DNA of 64,000 bases from Anaeramoeba ignava BMAN (lineage: Eukaryota; Protista; Anaeramoebae), in NCBI GenBank assembly GCA_028826165.1, contig JAPDFW010000057.1, forward strand, positions 1 through 64,000, read 5' to 3'. The notes beneath the pieces were generated by a model that saw only the letters and a program-made list of their open reading frames with translations, was not told the origin of the DNA and searched no databases. Positions 45,460 through 47,338 of this stretch are shown here, one piece after another. The translations under genes were made by a program, and so were the position numbers. Every line of letters begins with the position of its first letter. Position 1 is the first letter of the stretch.

Positions 45460-47338
45460 ATGAGTTTAAGAGAAAAAAGGTTAATGAGTGAATTAAAATC
45501 TTTAACTCAAAAAACACCTGATTTGATAAAAATTGTTAAAACTGAAAATCTTATGACTTGGTTAATTGAAATAACAGGTGCAGAAAAAACTCTTTATGAA
45601 GATGAAACTTATACTTTACAATTTGTAAAAAGCAATCAATTTTGGAGTCTCACATTTTTATCAAAAACAAAACAAAAACAACAAAACAAACCAAATCAAA
45701 TCAATTTAATATTCAATTCAATATTCAATTTATTTTAAAATTTAACATAATATTTAATATTTAATATTTAATCTAATATTTTATATTCAATTCAATATTT
45801 AATTCAATATTTAATTTAATATTTAATATTTAATTCTATATTCAATTCAATTCAATTCAATATTCAATATTCAATTCAATATTCAATTCAATATTCAATT
45901 CAATTCAATTTAATTCAATTCAATATTCAATTCAATATTTAATTCAATATTCAATTCAATATTCAATTCAATATTCAATTCAATATTTAATTCAATATTC
46001 AATATTCAATATTCAATATTCAATTCAATTCAATATTCAATTCAATTCAATATTTTATATTCAATTCAATATTCAATTCAATATTCAATTCAATTCAATA
46101 TTTAATTCAATATTCAATTCAATATTCAATTCAATTCAATATTCAATTCAATATTCAATATTCAATATTTAATTCAATTCAATATTTAATATTTAATTCA
46201 ATATTTAATTCAATATTTGATTCAATATTTGATTCAATATTTAATCTTCAATTTAATATTCAATATTTAATCTAATATTCAATTCAATTCAATTCAATTC
46301 AATATTCAATATTCAATATTTAATTCAGTATTTAATTCAATATTTAATATTCAATTCAATTCAATATTCAATATCCAATATTCAATATTCAATATTCAAT
46401 ATTCAATATTCAATATTCAATATCCAATATCCAATATTCAATATTCAATATTCAATATTCAATATTCAATTCAATTCAATATTCAATTCAATATTCATAT
46501 TCAATTTCAATTTCAATTCATTTCAATTCAATTCAATTCAATTCAATTCAATTTAATTCAATTCAATTTAATTCAATTCAATTTAATTCAATTCAATTCA
46601 ATTCAATATTTAATTCAATTCAATATTTAATTCAATATTTAATTCAATATTTAATTCAATATTTAATTCAATATTCAATATTCAATTCAATATTTAATTC
46701 AATATTTAATTCAATATTTAATTCAATATTTAATTCAATATTCAATATTCAATTCAATATTTAATTCAATATTTTATATTCAATTTAATTCAATTCAATT
46801 CAATTCAATTCAATTCAATTCAATTCAATATTCAATATTCAATATTCAATTCAATATTCAATATCCAATATTCAATATCCAATATTCAATTCAATATTCA
46901 ATCCAATATTTAATTCAATTCAATATTTAATATCCAATATTTAATGTTAAATTAATTGTAGAGATTTGATACAGAATACCCTCTTAAACCTCCTGAAGTT
47001 GTTTTTTTGCAAGAATCACCAGTCCAATATCCTTTAAATAATAAAAATCAAACAATCTAAAAAAAAAAATTTATCAATTTTATTGTTTTAATTTTTTCTT
47101 GACTTTCAAAAATACTCCTCATATTTATTCAAACGGTCATATTTGCTTAGACATTCTTGATGAATCTTGGACTCCAGCTTTAACAGTAGAAAGTGTTCTT
47201 TTATCACTCATTTCAATGATGAGTTCATGTAAAAAGAAAGAAAGACCACCAGATGATTCCAGTTATGTTCGTGCTTGGAAAAAAAACAAATTTTCTCCAA
47301 AAAAAACTAAATGGTTTTTTCATGATAATAAAGTTTAA
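45460..47338 (+). CDS. UBE2W: Ubiquitin-conjugating enzyme E2 W, exons 45460-45624, 46962-47026, 47116-47338
   Basis: Spliced: [23 protein letters not shown]|[19 protein letters not shown]|[46 protein letters not shown]. Confidence 0.92.
45700..46945 (+). repeat. Intronic array of ATTCA / ATATTCA / ATATTTAATTCA units
   Basis: Fills UBE2W intron 45625-46961. Confidence 0.95.
47027..47115 (+). other. U12-type (minor spliceosome) AT-AC intron, 89 nt
   Basis: 5' ATATCCTTT; branch site TTTTCTTGAC at 47094-47103; 3' TAC. Removal restores GTC CA|T CCT CAT = V-H-P-H. Confidence 0.92.

Follow-up and report, generated by a model that had tools for sequence, protein, structure and literature searches.

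A probable U12-type AT-AC intron in a UBE2W-family gene of Anaeramoeba ignava, with candidate minor-spliceosome components in the same genome

The window analyzed here is a stretch of 64,000 nucleotides of Anaeramoeba ignava BMAN DNA (assembly GCA_028826165.1, contig JAPDFW010000057.1, positions 1 to 64,000 of the forward strand), and our subject is an AT-AC intron, at 47027-47115, in a gene for a ubiquitin-conjugating enzyme. The gene consists of three exons separated by two introns (Table 1). A search with the open reading frame (ORF) of the first exon (45460-45735) returned one public protein, the 150-amino-acid (aa) "ubiquitin-conjugating enzyme e2 w [Anaeramoeba ignava]". The name of this protein agrees with a first-pass annotation of the window, made from the letters alone, which had guessed at an Anaeramoeba-like metamonad. 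The public protein corresponds exactly to exon 1 (55 residues), exon 2, a His residue and exon 3, joined at 47026/47116. It matches the Pfam family UQ_con with 120.6 bits and contains HPH...GHIC, the HPx motif followed by the catalytic Cys. Its closest homologues (from chytrids, crustaceans, and others) are 50-55% identical and are labelled E2 W. According to our in silico analysis, the gene belongs to the UBE2W family of ubiquitin-conjugating enzymes (E2) and its product has the UBC fold.

Exon 2 ends in ...CCAGTCCA at position 47026 and is translated as ...VVFLQESPV, followed by a His codon that is split CA|T. We enumerated every in-frame GT-AG, GC-AG, AT-AC, AT-AG, and GT-AC pair as possible splice sites. 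Our results showed that PVHPH, as it stands in orthologues, is obtained solely by removing 47027-47115. The in-frame GT-AG and GC-AG options all remove the HPH...C active site, and no AG is present between 47027 and 47149, the first one (at 47149) falling inside exon 3. These boundaries, which are also those of the junction in the public protein, and the lack of an AG ahead of the next exon had both been claimed in the first-pass annotation and both were confirmed. Its concern that the gene would be mis-modelled did not: the deposited gene model already splices 47026/47116, and UBE2W is therefore not mis-modelled in the deposited genome.

The other AT-AC option, 47027-47103, would place the 3' splice site at the AC of 47102-47103. 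It is also in frame, keeps the active site, and would give a 77-nt intron with an insertion of four residues in the protein. However, this AC lies inside the branch box described below, which would be destroyed, and the extra residues would interrupt a motif that six orthologues and the public protein have in one piece. We give this option next to no credence. The six orthologues that we mapped onto their genes (Gonapodya, Closterium, Pollicipes, Notodromas, Acytostelium, and Symbiodinium) all have the motif unbroken (6/6, with the variant PIHPH in Gonapodya), and none of them has an intron at PVH|PH. UBE2W is absent from the minor-intron gene tables of human and mouse (Olthof et al., 2019; PMC6717393).

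An insert of this kind might instead be no intron at all but an assembly error or the interruption of a pseudogene, which we regard as hardly conceivable. The 89-nt insert has an intron-like base composition (13.5% G+C) and exact consensus ends, and its removal restores the frame exactly. At least seven further genes show the same architecture, and the intron is also part of the public annotation.

As read from its sequence, 47027-47115 carries all the features that define a U12-type AT-AC intron. Its 5' end, ATATCCTTT, matches the RTATCCTT consensus at intron positions 1-8, its presumed branch A lies in the box TTTTCTTGAC, 13 nt from the 3' splice site, and its termini are AT and AC. The first-pass annotation had listed the same 5' box, branch position, and termini, all of which are present. 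The 9-mer RTATCCTTT occurs in the window at 5 sites, against 2.4 expected by chance, and by itself is therefore not rare. The remaining four are coding or unlike introns in other ways. The case for the intron is thus made by the features taken together and not by the 9-mer.

Introns of the same build are found elsewhere in the genome. A whole-genome pattern (ATATCCTT, 20-400 nt, TYCTTRAC, 7-14 nt, AC) gave 24 matches, compared to 13 for the reversed pattern that served as control. Script selection retained eight of the 24, the UBE2W intron included, with 9-19% G+C inside and open frames on both flanks. Thus, a TYCTTRAC box stands 7-14 nt ahead of the terminal AC in seven AT-AC introns besides that of UBE2W. 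By our own estimate, of 27 A+T-rich introns far fewer than one would have TYCTTRAC within such an 8-position window by chance. The branch boxes contain TTGAC, and not TTAAC, in 7/8 cases, despite a genome of about 80% A+T (loci L033, L035, L039, L043, L044, L046, L047, and L051).

Pfam analysis of the flanking exons identified the hosts of these introns as an ORC3-like gene, three ankyrin-DHHC palmitoyltransferases, and a family-B DNA polymerase; a further host is GOST_TM/TMEM87-like, with a weak, sub-threshold Pfam match. In the ORC3-like gene, the ORC_WH_C domain runs on across the AT-AC intron, and the three ankyrin-DHHC paralogues carry theirs at the identical codon (...FR[LVI][LI]P, then a split codon). 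ORC3, ZDHHC13/17, and TMEM87A/B are minor-intron genes in both human and mouse (PMC6717393, supplementary tables). ATG9A/B, FIG4, and ACTR10 also stand in these tables, and TOPBP1 does not. Since several host genes are homologous to mammalian minor-intron genes, inheritance is favored over convergence. Host genes common to such distant lineages point to inherited U12-type introns.

These introns belong to a class that was already counted in this genome. Supplementary Note 1 and Table S3B of the genome paper (Jerlstrom-Hultqvist et al., Nat Commun 2024; PMC11550330) report that 33 of 32,108 introns of A. ignava BMAN are AT-AC and that 32 introns start with (G/A)TATCCTTT, 27 with A and 5 with G. 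The UBE2W intron fits this set, from the same genome and of the same class. The supplement states that the branch-point motif is not conserved. We observed the strict branch box in no fewer than eight AT-AC introns, which contradicts this statement.

We searched the genome for the small nuclear RNAs (snRNAs) of the minor class with Rfam models. A U6atac-like RNA is located at contig 71:58882-58994, a locus separate from that of U6, with a score of 29.9 bits for a gathering score of 33; the U6 model itself gave a match of 88 bits. The core of the U6atac-like RNA, AAAGGAGAGAUGGUUAGCA, is one position off the family consensus and has a chance expectation of about 1e-4 occurrences per genome (own estimate). 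A U11-like RNA is located at contig 1:50977-51083, probably continuing through a 3' hairpin, and scores 26 bits, compared to a gathering score of 39. Folded to minimum free energy, it leaves the 5' AAAGGA free and forms a four-way junction, a stem capped by an AUCAA loop, a single-stranded Sm-like stretch rich in A/U, and the 3' hairpin. In duplex predictions, the AAAGGA of both RNAs is the exact complement of UCCUUU, which is invariant in the eight 5' splice sites. A. ignava is thus predicted to encode U11-like and U6atac-like snRNAs that can base-pair with this splice site.

Both of these genes are preceded by an 8-mer, TCCATAAT, which stands at -68 of the U6atac-like gene, at -70 of the U11-like gene, at -68 of U4, and at -100 of U6. 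A scan for TCCATAAT showed that it also precedes a U1-like start (GUACUUACCU) and two U5-like genes, while no U2 gene turned up in this genome scan. The 8-mer is usually followed by T/C-N-AAA. All of the snRNA-like genes seen have it 60-70 nt upstream, with the exception of U6 (100 nt). With its A-rich tail it occurs at 90 sites in the genome, compared to 12 in the control. From its position and recurrence, TCCATAAT looks like a proximal promoter element of the snRNA genes of A. ignava.

The other two minor snRNAs were not found: U12 by Rfam family search, motif patterns, cmscan of candidates or promoter-anchored patterns, and U4atac by family search, motif or promoter-anchored patterns, with 42-50 of the thousands of first-look candidates scored in the snRNA family search, so that this is non-detection and not absence. 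The later U12 and U4atac candidates were judged on 80 letters of pattern-search output. The U12 model (RF00007) gave best scores of 20 and 18 bits over the whole genome, and the 20-bit match was rejected, being antisense within a 303-aa ankyrin/transmembrane ORF. Patterns built on the conserved 5' end of U12, on its branch-pairing box, on the promoter box, and on a "GCAAG" variant were all negative. For U4atac, the best RF00618 match was U4, a pattern complementary to the U6atac-like RNA gave no match, the matches to TGCTAAC plus an Sm site were coding or without model match, and a promoter-box candidate on contig 139 was plain A/T-rich sequence. Of the Rfam snRNA models that the first-pass annotation had put forward, U11 and U6atac therefore gave sub-threshold candidates, and U12 and U4atac no credible match.

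Two repeated elements were noted during these searches. An A/T-rich element present in two copies (C57:379654-379707 and C74:100904-100957, minus strand) reads AUGAUGA followed by UUAAACUUAGGUAAGAAAAA, with more than 200 nt of identical sequence upstream (extracted loci L096:1447-1560, minus, and L097, same range). It was considered as U12 and rejected, as it has neither an AUGCC start nor an Rfam match. Separately, a near-identical stretch starting with TCCATAATCAAAAAGTAATCCACAAACCTC... is present on at least eight contigs (including C35:718962, C44:55696, C60:741839, C64:403988, C80:341017, C124:164041, and C143:113634) and represents a dispersed repeat or a gene family.

The repeated non-detection of U12 and U4atac with Rfam models, motif patterns, and promoter-anchored patterns could be explained by a reduced or hybrid minor spliceosome, in which U11 and U6atac are kept and U12, U4atac, or both are highly diverged or replaced by other RNAs. 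The TTGAC of seven of the eight branch boxes could reflect an altered U12 partner, and hybrid or diverged snRNAs are described in other metamonads (PMC6679479). However, non-detection on the scale of candidates scored here counts for little, and the branch boxes pair acceptably with the canonical GUAAGGAA through G-U wobbles. We consider such a reduced system unlikely. A related and more far-reaching proposal is that U12 and U4atac have diverged past the standard models along with a near-wholesale shift of minor introns to AT-AC (27/32, with none annotated in the sister species A. flamelloides) and the TTGAC preference. This is speculative, and we would expect it to hold only in the less favored case; if true, it would mean that, in a metamonad of extreme A+T content, minor introns and their snRNAs co-evolved fast within a single genus.

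At the protein level, the search was made with the Pfam families of 59K, 25K, CENATAC, zf-U11-48K, and zf-SCNM1; 65K, 35K, 31K, and 20K are without a specific family. PDCD7 (U11/U12-59K) is represented by an ORF on contig 76 that matches PF16021 with 67 bits and has human PDCD7 as its top PDB match. A 145-aa ORF on contig 116 matches PF18036 (Ubiquitin_4) with 57 bits as U11/U12-25K (SNRNP25), and its top PDB match is human U11/U12-25K (8r7n_B), nearly full length, with an E value of 1.2e-9. A CENATAC-like (CCDC84) gene on contig 64 matches PF14968 with 37.7 bits, over the cut-off. The 25K, 59K, and CENATAC-like genes are intact ORFs or exons, and the genome is predicted to encode these three proteins, which are specific to the minor spliceosome. 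Human CENATAC belongs to the minor spliceosome, co-occurs with it phylogenetically, and is required chiefly for minor introns of the AT-AN type (PMC8280824). This requirement fits the minor introns of A. ignava being mostly AT-AC.

Taken together, we consider it very probable that 47027-47115 is a U12-type AT-AC intron in the UBE2W-family gene of A. ignava, removed by the minor spliceosome as in human. By analogy with human, the 5' end of U11 (AAAGGA) would bind the UCCUUU in the 5' splice site by base pairing. A predicted U12 would pair with TTTTCTTGAC and leave the branch A bulged, at 13 nt from the intron's 3' end. U6atac (AAAGGAGAGA...GGUUAGCA) would then displace U11 at the 5' splice site and build the catalytic core, and exon joining would rebuild the His codon from CA|T.

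Several observations weigh against this reading. The box TTTTCTTGAC differs once from TCCTTRAC, with a T at the first C. The junction 47026/47116 rests on public annotation rather than on RNA reads examined. Both snRNA candidates lie under the Rfam gathering thresholds, neither U12 nor U4atac appeared in our searches, and the zf-U11-48K and zf-SCNM1 Pfam families have no match in the genome; SNRNP48 (48K) is one of the proteins that the first-pass annotation had proposed to search for. The same annotation had taken the intron to imply a working minor spliceosome; the U6atac-like, U11-like, 25K, 59K, and CENATAC-like genes speak for this, and U12 and U4atac are the parts not located.

The gaps in the snRNA set and the sub-threshold scores would also suit an AT-AC intron handled by the major spliceosome, and AT-AC ends alone are not diagnostic, as the genome paper notes (PMC11550330, supplement). 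However, the UBE2W intron and seven others do carry the 5' box and the branch box. Major-class AT-AC introns are not known to have ATATCCTTT, nor a TCCTTRAC-like box whose distance from the 3' end is fixed (10-15 nt). Both snRNA candidates, U6atac-like and U11-like, contain the AAAGGA that complements the 5' splice site exactly and are preceded by the snRNA promoter box, and three minor-specific protein genes are intact ORFs or exons. Handling by the major spliceosome is thus, in our opinion, very unlikely, and removal of the UBE2W intron by the minor spliceosome is the reading that we retain.

Table 1. Positions of the UBE2W gene features (numbered in the window), of the ankyrin-DHHC AT-AC introns (numbered in extracted loci), and of the TCCATAAT sites (C, contig)
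Feature	Location	Strand	Basis or remark
UBE2W exon 1 (Met to ...TYTLQF, 55 codons)	45460..45624	+	Translation; residues 1-55 of the public A. ignava protein
UBE2W intron 1, GT-AG type, 1337 nt, 14% G+C	45625..46961	+	Ends GTAAAAAG...TTGTAG
UBE2W exon 2 and bases 1-2 (CA) of the His codon	46962..47026	+	Public protein residues 56-76
UBE2W AT-AC U12-type intron, 89 nt, phase 2	47027..47115	+	Sequence; also caught by the genome-wide pattern search (C58:47027-47115)
5' splice-site box ATATCCTTT	47027..47035	+	Matches RTATCCTT consensus at intron positions 1-8
Branch-site box TTTTCTTGAC	47094..47103	+	Presumed branch A 47102; followed by 12 nt that include the final AC
3' terminal AC	47114..47115	+	Sequence
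UBE2W exon 3 (His base 3 through ...DNKV and stop), with catalytic Cys	47116..47338	+	Public protein residues 77-150; stop codon 47336-47338 by translation
Ankyrin-DHHC AT-AC intron	L043:1501-1674	-	
Ankyrin-DHHC AT-AC intron	L044:1501-1585	-	
Ankyrin-DHHC AT-AC intron	L046:1501-1605	+	
TCCATAAT site, U4	C95:129867		
TCCATAAT site, U6atac-like	C71:58814		
TCCATAAT site, U11-like	C1:50907		
TCCATAAT site, U6	C70:323368		
TCCATAAT site, U1-like	C115:417787	-	
TCCATAAT site, U5-like	C57:254454	-	
TCCATAAT site, U5-like	C67:346554		

Intron 1 of UBE2W consists nearly entirely of microsatellite arrays of ATTCA, AATATTC, and TCAATTCAATAT, with more than 170 copies of 5- and 7-nt units, and its tandem repeats span 45701-46945. 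A Kelch-repeat/BTB-like gene (47482-49323, minus strand) converges on UBE2W, the end of its last ORF (47482) lying about 145 nt from the UBE2W stop. Two neighboring paralogous ORFs (39433-40011 and 41456-42127, both minus) contain repeated ...KLHSHxxxxxxxSxQQEVT... units and are MIR-domain (SDF2-like) in appearance.

Neither the class of the UBE2W intron nor the minor spliceosome inferred for Anaeramoeba is new; both were available from the genome paper's supplement together with the public annotation. The supplement considers a minor spliceosome probable in the lineage on intron counts only, without reporting any search for snRNAs or proteins, and the main text makes no mention of U12; RNA-seq of A. 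ignava BMAN was aligned with Hisat2 in that work (PMC11550330). Our literature search found no other paper tying Anaeramoeba to minor splicing. The retention of minor splicing in this lineage, proposed in the first-pass annotation, is supported by our results and is not novel. What is new compared to PMC11550330 is the TYCTTRAC branch box, present in eight or more AT-AC introns, the host genes homologous to mammalian minor-intron genes, the candidate U6atac, U11, 25K, 59K, and CENATAC loci, and the snRNA promoter box. The UBE2W finding itself adds little, and the candidate loci and promoter box can be used for completing the parts list of this minor spliceosome.

Compared to vertebrate U12-type AT-AC introns, such as that of human and mouse ATG9A (5' ATATCCTTT, branch TTTTTCTTAACA; PMC6717393), the UBE2W intron has an identical 5' box and is alike in the branch box near the 3' end and in the AT-AC ends. 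It differs in being much shorter and far more A+T-rich, and the branch boxes of A. ignava favor G at the R position. With major-class (U2-type) AT-AC introns it shares the termini; these introns are not known to have the ATATCCTTT and fixed-distance TCCTTRAC boxes that it carries.

In Giardia, Spironucleus, and Trichomonas, likewise members of Metamonada, the distance from branch point to 3' splice site is fixed as well. In these organisms the consensus is U2-type, the snRNAs are hybrid, and the 65K protein was not detected (Hudson et al., 2019; PMC6679479). Unlike these diplomonads and parabasalids, A. ignava has canonical U12-type signals and separate U6 and U6atac-like genes. Since Giardia, Spironucleus, and Trichomonas show no separate minor system, Anaeramoeba would keep an ancestral trait of Metamonada. 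Its retention in Anaeramoeba helps to date the losses of the minor spliceosome within Metamonada, a point already made briefly in the supplement of PMC11550330.

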